Source of the DNA: Oculina patagonica
Lineage: Eukaryota
NCBI RefSeq assembly: GCF_052425735.1
Contig: NC_135761.1
Span: forward strand, 13,764,001 to 13,828,000
Direction: 5' to 3'
DNA length: 64,000 nt
Of this stretch, positions 48,977 to 64,000 are shown one piece after another. A model generated the notes under the pieces. It saw only the letters and a program-made list of their open reading frames with translations, was not told where the DNA came from and did not search any database. Position numbers and translations under genes: made by a program. Positions within the stretch are counted from its first letter, which is position 1. The number at the start of each line of letters is the position of its first letter.

Positions 48977-51190
48977 CTAAAGAAATTGTGGTTCGAGCTG
49001 TACGCTGCAGGTGCTATTCACTGTTTGTGCATCTGACAGGGAAGCGCGACAAGTAGGACCAATCCTGTTCAAACTCAAATCCAAATGAGACAACGTGATA
49101 TTCACTGTAAGAGCCTTAGAGAGAAAACCAGCACCAGAAGCACCAATCCAGTTCTCACTCAAATCCAAATCAGTCACTGTGGTATTAACAGTAAGAGCCC
49201 TAGAGAGAAAACCAGCACCAGAATCACCAATCCCGTTCGCACTCAAATTCAAGTCAGTCACTGTGGTATTCACTGCCAGAGCCTTAGAGAGAAAACCAGC
49301 ACCAGAATGACCAATCTTGTTCCCTCTCAAATTCAAGTAAGTAATTGTGGTCCTTTTATTAACAGTAAGAGCCCTAGAGAGGGAACCAGTACCAGAATCA
49401 CCAATCATGTTCCCACTCAAATCCAAATGCGTCAATGTGGTATTCACTACGAGAGCCTTAGAAAGAGAACCAGCACCAGAATAACCAATCCCGTTCCCTC
49501 TCAAATTCAAATACGTAATTGTGGTATTAACAGTAAGAGCACTAGAGAGTGAACCAGCACCAGAATCACAAATCGTGTTCCCACTCAAATCCAAATAAGC
49601 CAAAGCGGCATTCACTGTAAGAGCCTTAGAGAGAAAACCAGCACCAGAATGACCGATGCTGTTTCGACTTAAATCCAAATAAGCCAATGTGGTATTCACT
49701 GTAAGGGCCTTAGCAAGGGAACAAGCACCAGAATCACCAATCCTGTTCTCACTCAAATCCAAATGAGCCAATGCGGTATTCACTGTAAGAGCCTTAGAGA
49801 GAGAACCAGCACCAGAATCACCAATCGTATTCCGACTTAAAACCAAATGAGTTAATGTGGTATTCACTGTAAGAGCATCAGAGAGAGAACCAGCACCAGA
49901 ATTACCAATCCGGTTGCAAATTAAATTTAAATTAGCCAATGTGGTATTCACTACAAGTGCGTTAGAGAGTGAATCAGCACCAAAATCACCAATCCTGTTC
50001 CCACTCAAATCCAAATGAGTCAATGTGGTATTCACTGTAAGGGCCTTAGAGAGAGAACCAGCACCAGGATGACCTATCCCGTTCCGACTTAAATTCAAAT
50101 CAGTTAAAGTGGCATTAACTGTAAGCGCATCTGAGAGGAAACACGCCTCAGAATCACTAATCTCTAATGTTAAAGTTTCAAGGTCAAGGTGGGAACCAAA
50201 AGTATGCGCCAATCGAGACTGAAGGTTTTCTTTACAAGTTATACACTCCGTTATACAGTCAAAAGCGAAGCGCACATTTTTGGCTGTAACTTCAAGCTTA
50301 TTAAAAAGAGTACTGCGACCGCCGCAATTTATATGCTTAGTTATGCTTTTTACAAGACACACGGCGGTTTCTTCGCATTGTGACGTAACAATTCCACTCA
50401 TGAACAAAAATACTTGTTTAAGTTCAGTTAAATACCTCTTATCAGTCACTTCTGTATCCAAGTCAATTTCTTCGCTGAGAATCTTGGTGGCGAGATAGAA
50501 ACCAGCGAAGAACTCTTGAAAGCTCTTGTGTAAAAATCCGTAACGCAGGCAGGTTTTCCTTCTACTGCCTGCAGCTTGGACTGACAGAAATCCAAACTTG
50601 GTTAAAGCAGTTGAATTGCTACCAGATTCGCTTTCTTCAATATATAGCTCTCCTTTACGTAGAGAAATTAACGCCATAAGCCCCAGACATATTAGCTCTT
50701 TCTTGTAAACTTTAATTAGGTCTTCGTTGTTGCTAGCTAAGCCATTCTTCTTTTCGTATCTTCTCAAAACACAGAGAACAATTTCAATGTACAATTGAGT
50801 CCTGCTCGTCGGAAGATCACCCTCAAAATCCTCCCAGAGTACACAAAGTAAAGCTGTGTTTAGAGGATTTGACGTCAGTTCGCGTAAGTGATCAATAGAT
50901 CGAGGCCAGAAACATTCCACTAGTTCTTCTGGCCTATCGCCCAAGAAATCAGATCCATAAAGTTTCGTTAGAAGTTTGTCAGCCATAGGTTTGTTGTTTT
51001 TAAAGTGCTTGAAGATGAAACTTCGTGCATCTAGATAGGTGAATCCAACAATTTCCCACAGGGTATCACAGAAGCGCCTAAATTTCATTCCAACTTCATG
51101 TCTAGATGTAAGAATGATGCGACATTCAGGCAGCTCTCTACTTTCAACAAGTTTGATATACATTGGTAGTTTACTGGGGTCAGCTTCGTC
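48977..51190 (-). CDS. NLR-A: C-terminal part of NACHT + HD/WH + about 14 RI-type 28-aa LRRs (NLRC3/NLRC4-like)
   Basis: Open frame of about 738 codons: DEADPSKLP...ILTSR (sensor 1)...NPLNTALLC...FLHKSFQEFFAG, then LxxLxLxxNxIGxxGAxxLxxALxxNxT repeats. The first 31 aa of ORF 48977..51283 come from the LINE insertion. Confidence 0.85.
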   Translation of the reverse strand, partial: DEADPSKLPMYIKLVESRELPECRIILTSRHEVGMKFRRFCDTLWEIVGFTYLDARSFIFKHFKNNKPMADKLLTKLYGSDFLGDRPEELVECFWPRSIDHLRELTSNPLNTALLCVLWEDFEGDLPTSRTQLYIEIVLCVLRRYEKKNGLASNNEDLIKVYKKELICLGLMALISLRKGELYIEESESGSNSTALTKFGFLSVQAAGSRRKTCLRYGFLHKSFQEFFAGFYLATKILSEEIDLDTEVTDKRYLTELKQVFLFMSGIVTSQCEETAVCLVKSITKHINCGGRSTLFNKLEVTAKNVRFAFDCITECITCKENLQSRLAHTFGSHLDLETLTLEISDSEACFLSDALTVNATLTDLNLSRNGIGHPGAGSLSKALTVNTTLTHLDLSGNRIGDFGADSLSNALVVNTTLANLNLICNRIGNSGAGSLSDALTVNTTLTHLVLSRNTIGDSGAGSLSKALTVNTALAHLDLSENRIGDSGACSLAKALTVNTTLAYLDLSRNSIGHSGAGFLSKALTVNAALAYLDLSGNTICDSGAGSLSSALTVNTTITYLNLRGNGIGYSGAGSLSKALVVNTTLTHLDLSGNMIGDSGTGSLSRALTVNKRTTITYLNLRGNKIGHSGAGFLSKALAVNTTVTDLNLSANGIGDSGAGFLSRALTVNTTVTDLDLSENWIGASGAGFLSKALTVNITLSHLDLSLNRIGPTCRASLSDAQTVNSTCSVQLEPQFL

Positions 51191-51508
51191 TTTTGGGGAT
51201 AGAGCCTTTTGGGGATAGAGCCTTTGCCAAGGCAGGCCCCTCCCTGTGGAATGAGCTTCCTGTTGACATTCGCAAAGCGTCATCAGTGGAGACTTTTAAA
51301 AGTCAATTGAAGACTTTCCTTTTTAAGAAAGCATTTCGCGTTTAAGCGTTTTAACTTTTCAATCACACTGTTTCTAGTTTGATTTGTATGTAGGTTCATT
51401 CTAATTTTTATATTTTTATATTATTTTTACATATAGTAAACAGCGCTTTAGAATATTTATAGTTTTTAGCGCTATATAAATGTATAAATTAATTATTTAT
51501 TATTATAT
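51191..51508 (+). mobile_element. 5'-truncated L2-type LINE 3' end inserted in NACHT Walker B
   Basis: Encodes FGDRAFAKAGPSLWNELPVDIRKASSVETFKSQLKTFLFKKAF*, then an AT-rich 3' UTR and (tta)n tail. gtc is duplicated at 51188-51190 and 51509-51511. Antisense to the NLR. Confidence 0.9.
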
Positions 51509-51585
51509 GTCTAATCCATCAAGCACTAACAAAACTTTGGACTGTTTTTCACGAATGAATTTGAAAAAGCTCTCTTTCGATTCTT
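51509..51585 (-). pseudogene. NLR-A NACHT remnant (ESFFKFIREKQSKVLLVLDGLD) ending at a deletion junction
   Basis: Matches NLR-B at about 61643-61718, then joins directly to intron sequence equivalent to 62155. The 436 bp carrying the splice acceptor and Walker A are missing. Confidence 0.9.
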
Positions 51586-51980
51586 GAAAACATCAACACG
51601 ATCAGCACACTTTCTTTTCGAAACTTGATAGTGAATGGGGTGACAAGAGGATATGTTGGGACCTTATTGCATTCTTGTGTAAATTCGATTAACGTAGCCA
51701 TAACATCAGAAAAATCTAACGATCACAAGTGCAAACTGTTTATTAAATCGAAAGGGTTTCTAAGCTGGAATGGTTACACGGAAATTCACACAAGCCCCTA
51801 CGACCGCGCTGCAGGCAATATTGAATTTGAGGTGTTTAATAAAAAGAGCAGCTTTAGAATTCAACCAAGTTCTTGTATCAGAAGAGAAGTACAGACAAGT
51901 GAAATTTCACAGCGAATATCAGCAGAAAAAATTCCCACTTCGTTTTATGTCTACTTGTAAATTAAAACCTTTACAGTTAC

Positions 51981-52180
51981 CTTGATAGTCATCACCAGCA
52001 TTCAGTCTGTTAATTCCTAGCTAACGTTTGCAATCTCACAAAATTTACTTGACATTGTTATTTCGGCAATTCCAAAACTACGTGCCGTACCTGCATGCCG
52101 CTCACCAGTCATTCTCTGAGTACCCTGGGTGGTAGGTGAGGCTGACATTCCGCTTTTTGTGTGAGATGAGCTCTGGCAAT
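51981..52180 (-). CDS. NLR-A linker exons (52180-52091 and probably 52016-51981), both phase 1-1
   Basis: ctatag|AT TGC CAG...CAT GCA G|gtacgg and ctag|GA ATT AAC...TAT CAA G|gtaactg. The second acceptor is weak. Confidence 0.5.
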
Positions 52181-52542
52181 CTATAGAACACGACAACATA
52201 TACAAAAAGTATTTTTTTGACAATGTTTTTCTTATTTTAACTTTGGAAGTACCCGAACAGCAAAAGGGGTTTTGCTTTACGAATCATGTATAGTTAATTC
52301 TTTGATCGGTTAAATTTGTGCTCATCATGTTACGCGCAATAGCGGAAAAACGGCAAAAGTAAGCTTAATAATGGTTAACTGTTTTCCTACTTCTCTTAAT
52401 TAATAATATGGACCAGCGCGAAAAAGTTAAAAATCTACGTTTTTTTACGCAAGTCATCATTGTTTATTGGGCAAGAAACAGATTCTTTGCGACATATAAT
52501 TTACACATACATAATGTAAAAGGTTGTCACTATAATCCATAC

Positions 52543-53734
52543 CGTTGGTGATGCTGATCATCTTGGTAACAAGACTTTGACTTTGTTTTGCCCAGCTGTA
52601 TTTCTTCTCATAGGAAGAACGTAACACTTCAGCTTCCTGAAGTCGCGTCTCTCTGTCTTCTTTCCAGATTCCATTGATTGCTTCAGCCCATACCTTGGCA
52701 TCCTCGGAATCAATCACACACGATGAACCAAACGGTACCACATGTAGAGCTTCTCCAAATCCCGAATTCTTGCTTACAAGCACCGGGAGACCAGCTGATA
52801 AGGCTTCCAGACCTGTTAAGCCAAATCCTTCTGTTCTGGAAGGCATAAGCACAAGATCCACTTCGCAGAACAATCGTTTCAAATCCTCTCGGCTTTGCAG
52901 GAAGCTTCTTACTGTCAGGCGGCTAGCAGGAATCCCACACTCGAGTAGACGCTTCGCTATGTCCTCGTGCTTTCCTTCAGGGGCACCAACAAAAACAAGA
53001 TGAGCGTCCTTTAACTGAGCAATTGCTTTGCCTGCAATGTCAAAACCTTTTAACTGAAAATCTTCAGCATCTCCACGGCCAAACACTAAAACGCCACACC
53101 GTTTCCTCTCTTCAGCAGCGTGTTCAACATTCACAAAATCGTTAAAGACACCAGGGGTGAAGTCAAGAACGGTTTGATCTTTCTTGCACCAGCGAAGATA
53201 TGAACGAAAGGCCTCGCTCAACTTGGGCCCAACTCCTACAACAAAGTCAGCCTTTTCGCAAAGTTCTACTTCTGTTTTGTGTTTGTTCTCACCCTTTGAA
53301 ATCGGATTTTCGTAGGATTTAAACATTCCCAGTTCCTCAGGGTCTGTGTGGACAACTTGAACCCACCTACATTTGTGCGATTTTCTTATAACTTGTGCTT
53401 GGTGACCGAGCTTCACCCCATGGCCAACAATTACATCAATCTGCAAATCATCTGGCGGAAAGCTAAGCCACTCAAGTTCCTCATAACCAGGCCAACTTGT
53501 TGCTTCAACAATTTTAATGTTGAGGCTAAGGGCCGCTCTTTTGTCTTCTTCGCTGCAATGGGGCACAAAAAAAGTTATTTCTACCTCAGGGCATTTAGCC
53601 AACTGTATGGCCAATTCTCTGTTAATGGTCGACAGTCCGCCTTTACTCGACCCCCATTCCGATGCTAGAATTGTCACTTTTAATTTGCTAGCGAAAGAAT
53701 GTAGCTCTTCATGTTCTTGACCATGTTGTGCCAT
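52543..53734 (-). CDS. NLR-A N-terminal GT4 (GT-B fold, Glycos_transf_1) glycosyltransferase exon
   Basis: SEWGSSKGGLSTINRELA N-terminal GG loop, FGRG..KGFD, and PSRTEGFGLTGLEALSAGLPV (EX7E motif). Phase-1 donor AAC G|gtatgg. Glycosyltransferase-NLR fusions are known from corals. Confidence 0.9.
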
Positions 53735-54015
53735 GTTCTTGAGCTTGCTGTAAAGAAGACGTCATGGCATGCCGAGACGCCAAACACCTATCAAAAAAAA
53801 TATAACACCTTTGAGTGTGCAAACTTTGGTTTTGCATATTGAATAATTTGAGTCCTGGAGCGCGCGCCTTTTGTTAACCAAACATAAAGATAAACTAAAA
53901 AAGCAAAGTAACCTTTTCGTTAAGTATGGATGGGTGAAAGCGTGGACGTTAATAGCTGGAAAATGCTGAAATAGCTTCAAGTCTCAATCTAAGGGTTTTA
54001 ATCAGTAAATTGGCC

Positions 54016-59234: not shown

Positions 59235-60161
59235 CTACGTAATCACAAACAAGACGCAAAAATACCTTACGCTGCAGGTGTTATTGACCGTTTGTACTTT
59301 TGAAAGGAAAGCGTGACCAGAATCACCAATCCAGTTCCCACTCTGTAAGGGCCTTAGATAGAGACCACCAGCACCAGAAACACCAATCCCGTTCCCTGTC
59401 AAATCCAAATGAGTCAATGCGGTATTCACTGTAAGGGCCTTAGAGAGAGAACCAGCACCAGAAACACCAATCCCGTTCCCTGTCAAGTCCAAATGAGTCA
59501 ATGCGGTATTCACTGTAAGGGCCTTAGAGAGAGAACCAGCACCAGAATCACCAATCTTGTTCTTACTCAAATTAAAATGAGTCAACGTGGTATTCACTGT
59601 AAGCGTCTCAGAGAGAAAACCAGCTCCAGAATCACCAATCCTGTTCTCACTCAAATCCAAATGAGTCAATGTGGTATTCAGTATAAGGGCCTTAGAAAGA
59701 GCACCAGCACCAAAAACACCAATTTTGTTATCATTCAAATTCAACTCAGCCAACGTGGTATTCACTGTAAGAGCATCTGAGAGAGACCTAGCACCATAAT
59801 CAACAATATTGTTAGCAGCTAAGTTCAAATTAGTCAGTGTGGTATTCACTCTAAGGGCCTCAGAGAGGAAACCGGCACCAGAACCACCAATTTCGTTTAC
59901 ACCCAAATTCAAATGAGCAAGTGTGGTATTCACTGTAAGCGCCTCAGAGAGAGAACCAGCACCAGAATCACCAATCCTGTTCTCACTCAAATTTAAATGA
60001 GTCAATGTGGTATTCACTCTTAGAGAATCAGAAAGAGAACCAGCACCAGAATCACAAAGACCGTCGCCACGTAAATTTAAATAAGTAATGGTGTTATTAA
60101 CAGTAAGAGCATCAGAGATTGAAGCAACAACAGAAGGATGCACCCTATGGCAATTAGACAT
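59235..60161 (-). pseudogene. NLR-B distal LRR array (about 10-11 repeats), out of frame with the upstream NACHT ORF
   Basis: 28-aa LRRs separated from 60154..61962 by a 4-nt CATG insertion. Two near-identical 84-nt units and an internal deletion lie near the C-terminus. Confidence 0.8.
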
Positions 60162-62144
60162 GCAAATCCAACTTAGTCAATGCGGTATTTGCCTCTAGAG
60201 CTTTGGAAAGGGAAACACCAGCAGCCAGTTTCTGGCCAAGCCAGTTTCCACCCAAATCCAAATCAGTCAATGTGGCATTGGCTGTAAGAGCCTCCGAAAG
60301 GGAATCAACACACGAAACATCAATGCTGTTAGCTCTTAAACGCAAACTAGTCAATGTGGTATTGACTAAAAGAGCCTGAAAAAGAGAATCAGCACCAGAG
60401 TTTTCAATTGCATTAAATTTCAAATTCATATCAGCCAGTGTGGTATTGACTGCAAGCGCCTTAGAGAGAGAACCTGCACCGGAAGGACCAATTTTGTTCC
60501 CACTTAAATCTAAATTAGTCAACGTGGTGTTGACTGCAAGAGCATCAGAGACCAAACCTGCACCGCAAGGATCTATCTCGTTTTCACTCAAACGCAAACT
60601 AGTCAGTTTGGTATTAACAGCGAGGGCCTCAGCGAAATACTCAATGCAGTGACTATCCAAACGATCATGTAATTCTAAAGTTTGAAGGTCAAGGTGGGAA
60701 CCAAAACTACACACCAAACGGGACCGGAGGTTTTCCTGACGGGACACACATTCCTTTATACAGTCAAAAGCGAGCTTCACATTGCTGTTAATTTCGTTTT
60801 CGCCATTGGGAGTACAGCTGCCGAGGCAATTTATATGTGCGGTCATACTTTTTACAAGACACACCGCGGTTTCTTCGCACTGTGAGACAATAATTCCACT
60901 CATGAACAAAAATACTTGTTTCAGTTCATTTAAATATCTCTTATCAGCCACTACAGTGTCCAAGTCAATTTCTCCGCTAAGAATCTTAGAAGCGAGATAG
61001 AAACCAGCTAAGAATTCCTGAAAGCTCTTGTGTAGAAATCCATAACGCAGGCAGCGTTTCCTTCTACTGCCTGCAGCTTGGACTGACAGAAATCCAAACT
61101 TGCTTAAAGCGGTTGAATTGCTACTTCGTTTGCTTTTTTCGATATATAGCTCTCCGTTACGCAGAGAAATTAACGCCATATGCCCCAGATGTATTAGCTC
61201 TTCCTTGTAAACTTTTATAAGGTCTTCGCTGTCGCTCGACAAGTCTCTCTTGTTTTCATATCTTCTTAAAACACAGAGTACAATTTCAATGTACAATTCG
61301 GTCCTGCTCTTCGGAAGATCACCCTCGAAATCCTCACAAAGTACACAAAGTAAAGCTGTGTTTAGAGGATTTGACGTCATTTCCCGTAAATGGCGAGATC
61401 CTGACCGATGAGAAAGTTTTCGTAGAAGTTTGTCAGCCAAATGTTTCATGTCTTTAAAGTGCTTGAAGATGAAACTTTGCGCGTCTTTCCAGGTAAATCC
61501 AACAATTTCCCACAGGGTATCACAGAGCCGCCTAAATTTCATTCCAGCTTCATGTCTAGATGTAAGAATGACGCGACATTCAGGAAGCTCTCTACTTTCA
61601 ACAAGTTTGATATACATTGGCAGTTTACTGGGGTCAGCTTCGTCTAATCCATCAAGCACTAACAAAACTTTGGACTGATTTTCACGGATGAATTTGAAAA
61701 AGTTTTCTTTTGATTCTTCGTCAATATCTTCAGGAAGAATTTGATCATCGATAGCTTCCCAGATGCTAGATTTGATATCATGGCATCTAAGCAGCAGCAG
61801 TAATTCAATCTCGGGAAAAGACTCGTCCCATTCTTCCTGCCTGTTTGCCCAGTCATACGCCAGCTTTTGACAGTAGGTTGTCTTTCCCTTTCCAGGATCT
61901 CCTTCAATCAAAACAGTCCTTGGCTTCTGACATCCTTCATGTGCTTTGAAGATAGCTGTCATGTTGGTGATTTCCTCAGTCAGTGTTCCTCTTGTTTTTT
62001 CTCTGTTAACAATCCTGAGCCTGGTGAAAATCTCACTTAGATGAAAGCTGAAATCATCACACCAAGGAACTGGTAGAACGCGTTCTTCACGGGTTTTGTA
62101 GATCTGGCGAATCCTTTCTATGACGTGGGATGGATAAGATATAT
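60154..62144 (-). CDS. NLR-B NACHT NTPase + first about 6 LRRs (truncated by frameshift)
   Basis: Phase-1 acceptor ttctag|AT ATA TCT. PVPWCDDFSFHLSEIFTRL, Walker A GDPGKGKT, Walker B LLVLDGLDE, ILTSR, NPLNTALLC, FLHKSFQEFLAG. Confidence 0.9.
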
Positions 62145-62573
62145 CTAGAAAGCAGAAAACATCAACACGATCAGCACACTTCCTTTTCGAAACTTGATAG
62201 TGAATGGGGTGTCAAGAGGATATGTTGGGACCTTATTGCATTCCTGTGTTAATTCGATAAACGTAGCCATAACATCAGAAAAATCTAACGATCACAAATG
62301 CAAATAACTTGCTTCAATGCAAACTGTAATTTATTAAATCGAAAGGGTTTCTAAGTTGGACTGGTTACACGGAAATTCACACAAGCTCCTACGACCGCGC
62401 TGCAGGCAATATTGAATTTGAGGTGTTTAATAAAAAGTGCAGCTTTAGAATTCAACCAAGTTCTTGTATCAGAAGAGAAGTACAGACAAGTGAAATTATC
62501 ACACGAAAATCAGCAGAAAAAATTACCATTTCGCATTATCTAACAACATGTATAGTCACAGCTCAAAACTCAC

Positions 62574-63224
62574 CTTCTTCTCCAGAAGCTTCCATCACAC
62601 TCTCCAGTTCATTCATTTTGTCCTTTACGCAGTTCTCGTTCTTCTTCCACTGTTTGAAAAGCTCCTTGTAGTGTTCCTCGGTGAGAGGGTCCATGTTCTG
62701 ATTCTTCATTTCATCCACGGCGTCTCCATAACCAGCTCCTCCTAGTCTCACCAGCATCTCCCGGATGTTCTCCCAGTAGTCCATAAATACTGCATCACTA
62801 ACAAAGGCTTTGTCTTCATGGCTAAACACAGTATTAATGAAATACCTCACACGGGCAATGTCAGCCTCACGACTGCAGTCTGCTGCAAGTGGAGGTGTGT
62901 CCCAGCCAGCTGTTGGAGGGGTCAACTCACAAATTGTTCTCAGTAGAACCATCAGGAGTGTGGGGTCGAAGTCTTTTGATGACACAGAGGAGGCATGTGC
63001 TGGATACAGTTGACCCCACTGTTTGGAACTGAGGATTCCTTGCTTTCGAAGTGATTGCAGTGTCTCATGTACTCGGAAGCCTTTCAAATGTTTCTGAAGG
63101 TTTTTTGGTGGAATGACTCTGTCAAATGTTTCACTCAGGACCCCTGAGCCCACGGTGACCAGAAGCTGACACAACCTTGCATAGTTGGATTCCTCATTGG
63201 AAGAGGTAAATTTGGGGACAGTGC
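62574..63224 (-). CDS. NLR-B DZIP3/hRUL138-like HEPN domain exon (phase 1-1, 651 nt)
   Basis: SNYARLCQLLVTVG...QWGQLYP...FDPTLLMVLLRTIC..PPTAGWD...ADIARVRYFINTVFSH matches the DZIP3-type HEPN found in cnidarian NLRs. Confidence 0.85.
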
Positions 63225-63729
63225 CTACAACAGTTCATAAAACAAACACTTGATGAGTCAACGCATTACATTCTGAGGTGAGGTAAGGTTATGTTATCAT
63301 GGTCCTAAAAGGGCTGATTCCTTAGACATTATCTTCTTTAGCATTTTCACCACTGATGATGCTTCATGGTTGTAAAAACGTCTGGTGTGATCGTCCAGGT
63401 GAGGTAGTTCTTATATGGTAACGGACTTATTTGCTCAGGCTTGAACATAACGTCGGTTTCGTCATAACGTCCGTTACCAAAAACAGAGTTTTCAAGACTA
63501 ACTTCACCACGATGATCACACTAAACGACCAACCGATACCCCTAAGATCAAACAAGTTTAAGTAATTGGTTTCTAACTAGACAAAAACATGTTGGGACTT
63601 AATTTTACCATTGGTGCAATTTGGTGTAGACTTTGGGGTCAACAACATTACGAAAATGGTCATTGAGTATAGCGTACAGAGCACATTATGTCTTAGTTAC
63701 TATTCTTAAATCAAATCCTTTACAGTTAC

Positions 63730-64000
63730 CTTGTCCTTGTTAAAGACTCACATAGTGTTTCTCGTGAATGTGTCCCAGCACAAGTGGGATGGTGTTGTCG
63801 ACAGTGCCATGATCTGGAGTGATGATTACATCACAGTCAAGACTGCTAATAACACGGATACGAGTTTTGTAGCAGTTTGCTGCAGCACGGAGAATCAAAT
63901 GATCGCCCCAGGTGCCATCTTTTCCCATGCCTCTTAGGTAATCAGCCCAGGAGGGATATCCATGGACAAAGTTGAACAGGTCTGTTCCATCGGGCTTTGT
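63730..64000 (-). CDS. NLR-B OTU-family deubiquitinase domain, C-terminal half (continues beyond window), with in-frame TAA at 63740-63742
   Basis: WADYLRGMGKDGTWGDHLILRAAANCYKTRIRVISS...LVLGHIHEKHYVSL gives the OTU WG motif and HY His box. Phase-1 donor CAA G|gtaact at 63730. Confidence 0.8.

Follow-up and report, generated by a model that had tools for sequence, protein, structure and literature searches.

Animal NOD-like receptors (NLRs) are mostly understood through death-fold signalling, and cnidarians hold hundreds of NLRs with enzymatic heads. We have analysed a locus of the coral Oculina patagonica at the end of a 64,000-nt stretch (the window; C4:13764001-13828000, on the chromosome-scale contig C4 of an assembly of 529 Mb), where a single minus-strand gene appears to place three predicted enzymes, a GT4-conflict glycosyltransferase, an OTU protease resembling deubiquitinases and a DZIP3-type HEPN domain, in front of a NACHT NTPase and leucine-rich repeats (LRRs). 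Positions past 64000 are given as extended coordinates, that is, the C4 position minus 13764000.

Enzyme-headed NLR-like proteins of fungi and bacteria (bNACHT, Avs) usually carry one effector, whereas three different predicted enzymes are stacked here. The present gene follows the same logic, in which a sensor repeat and a STAND NTPase are combined with an enzymatic effector that assembly switches on (bioRxiv 2022.07.19.500537); in none of the papers that were searched is an OTU effector described on a NACHT protein. Also comparable are the HEPN_DZIP3-NACHT-LRR receptors of cnidarians (Emery et al. 2021, PMC8260672; Noel et al. 2023, PMC10236652), a family greatly expanded in anthozoans, in which a DZIP3-type HEPN domain stands directly before NACHT and ribonuclease-inhibitor-type (RI-type) LRRs, as it does here, but without the GT4 and OTU modules that precede HEPN in this locus. 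The GT4-conflict domain, massively expanded in corals, is joined to a STAND NTPase in the GT4-NACHT proteins of corals and bacteria, as their predicted effector (Hamada et al. 2013, as cited in PMC8260672; Kaur et al. 2021, PMC8195603). The supplement of the latter (PMC8195603) lists GT4 with NACHT 114 times and OTU with GT4 five times, the two passages available for that pair both concerning amphioxus, and contains no entry for OTU with NACHT, OTU with HEPN or GT4 with HEPN and NACHT. The accessible parts of the text and supplements of PMC8260672 and PMC10236652 make no mention of OTU with NACHT, and our literature search found no paper that pairs the two in cnidarians or describes such a receptor, in agreement with the original prediction, made from the letters of the window alone, which knew of no characterised OTU-HEPN-NACHT-LRR receptor. 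The architecture is thus present in automatic annotation but undescribed, while HEPN-NACHT and glycosyltransferase-NACHT receptors of cnidarians are already known.

We propose, with a probability of about 0.8, that the locus is one multi-exon minus-strand gene of the order GT4-linker-OTU-HEPN-NACHT-LRR, transcribed and spliced but a pseudogene, which arose from shuffled phase-1 cassettes. The C-terminal half of the OTU domain, the HEPN exon and the NACHT-LRR exon lie in this order on one strand of the window, where the original prediction had placed them. We fetched the region past 64000 and assembled 210 kb (C4:13764001-13974000) for a map of the modules. The OTU Cys box that was to be sought beyond the window's end is found there, together with a linker exon and the GT4 exon, 0.8-4.4 kb on (Table 1). 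The predicted OTU-HEPN-NACHT-LRR order therefore stands, but its extent does not: the head is larger, with GT4 and linker preceding a two-exon OTU domain, and the architecture had already been annotated, as ACROYT_G012405 and ACROYT_G012413. All five introns have GT..AG borders and matching phases, and the two junctions that had been called compatible phase-1 joints are both GT..AG in phase 1. Both the HEPN exon (651 nt) and the pair of OTU exons (251 + 265 = 516 nt) are symmetrical phase-1 cassettes and, since the head modules are bounded by phase-1 introns, such cassettes can be added, lost or swapped with the reading frame kept. At the C-terminal end, NACHT scores 75 bits in Pfam and is followed by RI-type LRRs (LRR_6, 136 bits; E = 5e-41 at 59238-60161 and E = 1e-14 in the upper part of the exon).

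That the modules belong to one spliced gene, as had been predicted, is borne out by short Logan contigs from four public runs (X1, X2, X6 and X7), compared with a 5.95-kb target spanning the junctions. These runs carry no record of being RNA; the loss of introns at GT..AG borders indicates that the contigs derive from spliced RNA. Four of the five introns are removed at their predicted lengths of 429, 505, 845 and 1553 nt. Between HEPN and NACHT, one contig of X6 and two of X7 lack precisely the 429 nt of the intron (plus-strand ends CT..AC), and so match the predicted junction 62574>62144 to the letter. The other predicted junction, 63730>63224 between OTU exon 2 and HEPN, had been named beforehand as the place where the reading could fail, and it appears in the contigs at the exact length of 505 nt: an X1 contig lays 147 mismatch-free nt on the local HEPN exon and 41 nt on OTU exon 2, and an X6 contig skips the same 505 nt. 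The two OTU exons are joined across exactly 845 nt by an X7 contig and also, with 10-12 diverged letters, in X1 and X2, while an X1 contig skips the 1553 nt between GT4 and linker. The alignment puts the 505- and 1553-nt joints 2-3 nt away from the canonical site, and one differing letter accounts for each shift (at the 505-nt joint TGC versus TAC, with a 3-nt offset). Moreover, a 610-nt contig of X7, 88-92% identical to the locus, runs through OTU exon 2 and OTU exon 1 and, after 139 letters without a match, reaches the GT4 exon; linker and diverged exon ends together would give about this length.

The idea that GT4-OTU closes a ROCO gene lying upstream was rejected, as tblastn of whole LRR-Roc-COR-GT4-OTU proteins (P0299, P0304 and P0278) against about 30 kb upstream of the GT4 exon revealed no Roc or COR exon; the sole extra match was weak, of 46 residues and at the far edge (extended 97863-98000).

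The original prediction also held that this copy is damaged. It is: a TAA stands at 63742-63740 and a frameshift near 60160, and the linker exon adds a third lesion, a 5-bp tandem duplication. At the TAA, five paralogs have the codons AAA, CAA, CAA, CTA and GTA, and all five keep the donor CAAG/GTA. The frameshift separates the open reading frames 60154-61962 and 59235-60161, which lie in different frames: one frame reads LDLHV and then a stop, and the LRR pattern goes on as SNCHRVHPSVVASISDAL in another. The paralogous protein P0345 aligns here by tblastn in two pieces (62145-60163 and 60161-59412), in different frames and collinear across the break, and extends about 250 residues past the frameshift through the same DNA in the other frame. 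Thus the locus is a transcribed and spliced pseudogene with at least three disabling lesions, which can encode at most a GT4-only fragment.

This state is concealed in the public record. The GenBank model ACROYT_G012405 (P0320, O. patagonica, 1712 aa) is 97-100% identical per exon to the locus and carries GT4, OTU, HEPN_DZIP3, NACHT and LRR_6. Past HEKHY it switches to a GTGAGT donor at 63751, followed by a 30-residue mini-exon taken from the intron, thereby sidestepping the TAA; between the GT4 exon and the linker it inserts a further exon and then reads the linker in a non-homologous frame; and it ends at the frameshift stop. We rejected the bridging exons (residues 562-604 and 802-831), which come from intron sequence or could not be located, as they have no paralog match and are absent from the listed joints. 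The model is an artefact that masks a pseudogene, and the practical lesson is that counts of novel domain combinations drawn from automatic coral annotation need checks at the DNA level. P0320 also opens with an 88-residue exon (extended 75320-75583), about 7 kb upstream of the GT4 exon, unlike the paralog model P0319, which begins at the GT4 exon; this extra N-terminus may come from another gene or be a prediction artefact.

With regard to the domains themselves, the two OTU halves each fall just under the Pfam cut-off (PF02338, 23.3 bits), at 22.1 bits for exon 1 and 21.9 bits for exon 2, and the joined domain in P0320 exceeds it at 41.3 bits. We aligned 41 OTU cassettes from NLR, ROCO, G protein-coupled receptor (GPCR), kinase and Death contexts and built a maximum likelihood tree from them. 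Across all 41, neither the catalytic Cys and His nor the adjoining G-N-C-x-F and H-Y vary. The AlphaFold2 model derived from this alignment (pLDDT 87, pTM 0.80) has as its top PDB matches in Foldseek OTUD1, OTUD3 and OTUD5 (TM 0.66-0.71, E about 1e-6, probability 1.0), followed by Wolbachia and nairovirus OTUs; by sequence, the best match is OTUD5 (E = 0.004). Human OTUD1, OTUD3 and OTUD5 (DUBA) and the nairovirus and Wolbachia enzymes (e.g., 4bop, 4bou, 3tmp) share the fold, and their catalytic Cys and His align with those of the coral domain, but they are 18-24% identical to it and stand alone where the coral domain is embedded in a receptor. Full competence of the OTU domain for catalysis is likely, subject to the Ser that this coral clade has at the position of Asp221 of OTUD5 (see below).

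The EX7E motif marks GT4 enzymes, and it is present in the GT4-conflict domain, which matches PF20706 at 285 bits over profile positions 2-385. The HEPN_DZIP3 domain covers the full profile (PF18738, positions 1-144; E = 6e-51, 172.4 bits against a cut-off of 27 bits), and R, N and H in ARVRYFINTVFSH are invariant across five sequences. The active site of the HEPN_DZIP3 family has been graded 'mostly conserved' (PMC3710099). A relative of the HEPN domain with a solved structure was sought and none was found.

Relatives of the gene are predicted in other corals, all by automatic models. P0327 ('NLRC5-like') and P0328 of Pocillopora verrucosa, P0324 of Porites lutea and P0326 of P. lobata have GT4, OTU and NACHT in the order seen here, followed by LRRs except in P0328, and differ in that the HEPN cassette is absent. 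P0327 is collinear with the locus exon by exon in tblastn (72% identity in GT4, 77% in OTU exon 2 and 52% in NACHT-LRR), its OTU domain ending at residue 600 and its NACHT exon beginning at 605. In the OTU tree P0327 groups with the studied copy and P0319 at support 99/97, the position of the Porites NLR cassettes is not resolved and P0328 falls among ROCO-type cassettes, which suggests that OTU and NACHT were joined more than once or exchanged. These proteins surfaced only when a long GT4-OTU protein was the query. A protein search with the NACHT exon alone returned only proteins of up to 1158 aa, none with OTU, which is a length-window effect, and when OTU exon 2 was searched against 50%-identity representatives the hits were mainly fragments, without any OTU-NACHT protein.

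The OTU cassette is common in stony corals. It forms, with GT4, the ends of LRR-Roc-COR-GT4-OTU proteins of the ROCO type in Stylophora (P0278, P0276, P0294), Oculina (P0299, P0304), Porites (P0280-P0286) and Pocillopora, and it occurs as well with Death, PNP_UDP, GPCR, kinase and caspase-ROCO domains and with an integrase. The GT4-OTU order of the listed ROCO proteins is that of the studied gene, their OTU identity is 54-63% and the pair is likewise attached to a signalling NTPase with LRRs; however, that NTPase is a Roc-COR switch rather than NACHT, and the pair is C-terminal there and N-terminal here. In Stylophora pistillata, P0025 and P0273 carry the same OTU cassette, about 60% identical, on the C-terminus of an LRR rhodopsin-type GPCR (GRL101-like), a further unexpected union of a receptor with OTU. 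The O. patagonica genome holds about 25 close OTU cassettes. About 30 remote matches (34-47% identity) are embedded in very long open frames of up to 2,457 aa (e.g., C4:31821367, C2:33694629 and C10:13657502), and these copies are probably transposon-encoded; the supplement of PMC10236652 includes coral orthogroups in which OTU goes with PIF1 helicase or hAT domains.

The studied gene belongs to a tandem array of six or seven GT4-headed genes, all on the minus strand (C4:13764001-13974000; Table 1). The GT4-conflict exon of g1 (53728-52544) is 89% identical to that of the studied gene and is followed by a linker at about 52096-52196 and a NACHT region of which only the C-terminal 62% is left, the P-loop part missing, and then LRRs. 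Homologous linkers are also present in g5 and g6. In g3, the frames of GT4 and both OTU exons are open and the phase-1 donor is intact, and there is no HEPN or NACHT match downstream of it before the next array gene. The fourth gene, g4, has the same modules in the same order as the studied gene and is the sole other OTU-HEPN-NACHT copy in the genome. In its LRR exon, about 1 kb of non-coding DNA (C4:13908026-13909038) with long A-runs and a tRNA-like stretch has been inserted, past which a further LRR frame with the conserved C-terminus follows. The genome thus offers no clearly intact OTU-HEPN-NACHT copy as the working paralog that the original prediction had anticipated. The insertion in g4 looks like a short interspersed nuclear element, and the GenBank model of g4 stops at the resulting stop codon.

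Pairwise ratios of nonsynonymous to synonymous substitution (dN/dS) are 0.17-0.25 for GT4, 0.41-0.57 for OTU exon 1, 0.22-0.29 for OTU exon 2, 0.25-0.38 for HEPN and 0.21-0.30 for NACHT. By this measure every module, OTU included, evolved under constraint, and the decay seen here is recent. The HEPN cassette of the studied gene is about 88% identical to those of g5 and g6, with a synonymous divergence (dS) of 0.14-0.21; against g4 its dS is above 1.1, whereas the flanks of the same two genes are close (dS 0.15 for OTU exon 2 and 0.33 for NACHT), which indicates that the HEPN cassette was exchanged between copies. The array is therefore a clear case of exon shuffling, in which OTU and HEPN phase-1 cassettes are present, absent or replaced between neighbours. 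Genome-wide, 264 candidates yielded at least 150 HEPN_DZIP3 matches over the Pfam cut-off, which stand in large tandem clusters (e.g., C8:26.6-27.1 Mb, C8:29.5-30.5 Mb and C9:12.4-13.5 Mb), and the copies on C9 lie in single open frames of about 1,350-1,580 aa.

Several points weigh against the view that this is a single, decayed gene whose intact relatives use all of these modules. Among the contigs of the four runs no joint between linker and OTU exon 1 was seen directly; short contigs may be chimeric between paralogs, and one full-length transcript is beyond their reach, as is the state of the transcript at the TAA, the 5-bp duplication and the frameshift. One X1 contig joins GT4 straight to HEPN with two extra letters, and may stem from a paralog without OTU or reflect exon skipping. 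The calls of the lesions rest on a single assembly. As both OTU-HEPN-NACHT copies are damaged, the exact five-module form may be out of use. In the OTU domain, this coral clade has Ser at Cys-3, where it aligns with Asp221 of OTUD5 (among the 41 cassettes the column holds S 19 times, D 12 times, G 5 times and E 3 times), and His+2 is Val; in HEPN, the spacing from R to H is 8 or 10 residues, off the textbook Rx4-6H.

Could the DNA hold two genes instead, a GT4-OTU gene ending at the TAA and a separate HEPN-NACHT-LRR gene downstream, with the joining contigs being read-through or chimeric? The TAA is only three codons short of the donor, g3 is a GT4-OTU gene with nothing of HEPN or NACHT behind it, and in coral ROCO proteins the C-terminal GT4-OTU pair is followed by the protein's end a few residues past OTU (P0278). 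We nevertheless think such a division very unlikely: the HEPN exon begins in phase 1 at an AG acceptor, without a start codon of its own, a sense codon and the phase-1 donor are found in five paralogs, the 505-nt intron is exactly removed in contigs of two runs, and both P0319 and the Pocillopora RefSeq model P0327 run from OTU into the next module. It is hardly credible that the gene is instead intact as drawn in ACROYT_G012405, its alternative donors and small exons bypassing the stops and its shorter LRR part being the native end, for the listed contigs show the 505- and 1553-nt introns in place of the bridging pieces, whose lack of a paralog match was noted above, the 5-bp duplication creates a TGA in the linker frame that is homologous to the paralogs, and the model stops at a frameshift past which P0345 is about 250 residues longer in the other frame; what it has in its favour is an open product with all five domains and the strength of the GTGAGT donor. 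A working GT4-OTU-HEPN-NACHT-LRR gene might still exist at this locus in the species if the assembly were wrong at the lesions or if they marked a null allele of a single individual. Presence/absence variants and null alleles are common in NLR arrays, spliced transcripts come from the locus, and its dN/dS against paralogs is as low as between other copies, so that any decay is recent. However, the lesions number three or four, are independent and differ in kind (the 5-bp duplication, a substitution, a 1-nt shift outside any homopolymer and the patch at about 59360), which makes coincident assembly errors unlikely, and we regard this explanation as unlikely overall, if less so than the two before it.

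More substantial is the doubt about what the OTU domain does. Integrated decoys of plant NLRs are domains copied from a pathogen target and are often catalytically dispensable. The original prediction allowed for such a decoy, and the domain could also be a processing protease that frees the GT4 or HEPN head; its position between two other enzymatic modules and the Ser in place of an acidic residue at Cys-3 would suit a role other than deubiquitinating effector. In bacterial polymorphic toxins, OTU domains have been proposed as processing peptidases or toxins (PMC3482391), a further point in favour of processing. The decoy is weakened by the invariance of Cys, His, G-N-C-x-F and H-Y across 41 cassettes from several receptor contexts, with which retained catalysis fits better; the closest folds belong to genuine deubiquitinases and deISGylases, and the dN/dS of OTU exon 2 is low. 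Taken together, invariant catalytic residues and dN/dS of 0.2-0.6 would argue for retained enzymology, bait use being compatible with them, and we hold a decoy or processing role to be rather improbable.

HEPN RNases commonly act as dimers, so that proximity induced by assembly would suit this module. In intact members of the family, on the logic of STAND receptors and much as the original prediction supposed for the deubiquitinase, LRRs would sense a ligand and NACHT would oligomerise, gathering the head enzymes and switching them on. Host or invader proteins would then lose ubiquitin or a ubiquitin-like modifier to OTU, and GT4 would glycosylate a target; modification of a target has been proposed for GT4 effectors (PMC8195603). 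Tentatively, we suggest that stony corals possess a portable GT4 and OTU unit, used on the N-terminus of NACHT-LRR and on the C-terminus of LRR-Roc-COR proteins, to which HEPN was added in Oculina, and that ligand-driven assembly of intact members might directly activate a deubiquitinase; as a whole this is a speculative proposal. If true, it would define a class of animal NLR that signals by ubiquitin editing and not through death-fold adaptors. An OTU domain with an intact Cys-His pair, kept by purifying selection, shared by Oculina and Pocillopora NLRs and reused on ROCO proteins, offers a candidate output that can be assayed as cleavage of ubiquitin or a ubiquitin-like modifier.

Table 1. 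Parts of the studied gene, its lesions and the other genes of the array (ext., extended coordinates; other plain numbers are window positions).
Feature	Position	Strand	Remarks
Probable start ATG (MASSLQQ)	ext. ~68352	minus	in GT4-conflict exon
GT4-conflict exon	ext. 68352-67152	minus	donor CACG/GT, phase 1; PF20706 285 bits
EX7E motif EGFGLTGLE	ext. 67440-67414	minus	in GT4-conflict exon
Linker exon	ext. 65598-65504	minus	95 nt, against 90 nt in g4
Lesion 1, duplication of ATGAT giving TGA in the homologous frame	ext. 65521-65530	minus	from linker alignment with g4
OTU exon 1, Cys-box half	ext. 65090-64840	minus	251 nt; enters phase 1, leaves phase 0
Cys box SGNCMF (context DNPASGNCMF)	ext. 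64959-64942	minus	in OTU exon 1
OTU intron	63995 to ext. 64839	minus	845 nt; crosses window end
OTU exon 2, C-terminal half	63994-63730	minus	265 nt; enters phase 0, leaves phase 1; donor CAAG/GTA
TWGDH	63913-63899	minus	in OTU exon 2
His box HEKHY (translation HIHEKHY)	63766-63752	minus	in OTU exon 2
Lesion 2, in-frame TAA	63742-63740	minus	between His box and donor, 3 codons before donor
Intron, OTU exon 2 to HEPN	63225-63729	minus	505 nt; GT..AG
HEPN_DZIP3 exon	63224-62574	minus	651 nt; phase 1 at both ends; acceptor AG, no start codon of its own
HEPN Pfam match	63108-62668	minus	PF18738
Conserved HEPN stretch ARVRYFINTVFSH	62856-62818	minus	in HEPN exon
Intron, HEPN to NACHT	62145-62573	minus	429 nt; GT..AG
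NACHT-LRR exon, last large exon	59235-62144	minus	acceptor AG 62146-62145, phase 1; stop TAG 59237-59235
NACHT NTPase domain	61450-61920	minus	PF05729 E = 9.6e-21; exon-translation residues 75-231
Walker A GDPGKGKT	61902-61879	minus	in NACHT
Walker B LLVLDGLDE	61665-61639	minus	in NACHT
Lesion 3, LRR frameshift running into TAA 60156-60154	60154-60163	minus	two open reading frames in different frames
Short out-of-frame patch, fourth damage	~59360	minus	LRR part
g1	about 48977-53761	minus	GT4, linker, partial NACHT, LRR
g3	C4:13880772-13883607	minus	GT4-OTU only
g4 (P0319, ACROYT_G012413)		minus	GT4-linker-OTU-HEPN-NACHT-LRR
g5, g6 (P0339, P0345)		minus	GT4-linker-HEPN-NACHT-LRR, without OTU
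Seventh GT4 exon	far end of array	minus	

Two introns of the studied gene contain repeats. Within the OTU intron lies an antisense fragment of a long interspersed nuclear element reverse transcriptase (extended 64146-64553, plus strand), with a 135-aa open frame that resembles the C-terminal tail of a reverse transcriptase and has no Pfam match; it shows the high contig depth and many loose ends that repeats show. The intron between GT4 and linker holds a high-depth stretch (extended 65780-66575), which was considered as a non-coding RNA and rejected, as Rfam gave no more than a chance match below threshold, CRISPR-DR21 at 30 bits against a cut-off of 48. It is an interspersed repeat of about 755 bp (extended 65780-66580): scoring 40 of 472 candidate places in the genome gave 43 matching pieces, mostly of 88-97% identity, and with a contig depth above 1000 in run X7 it looks like a young, expressed non-autonomous element.

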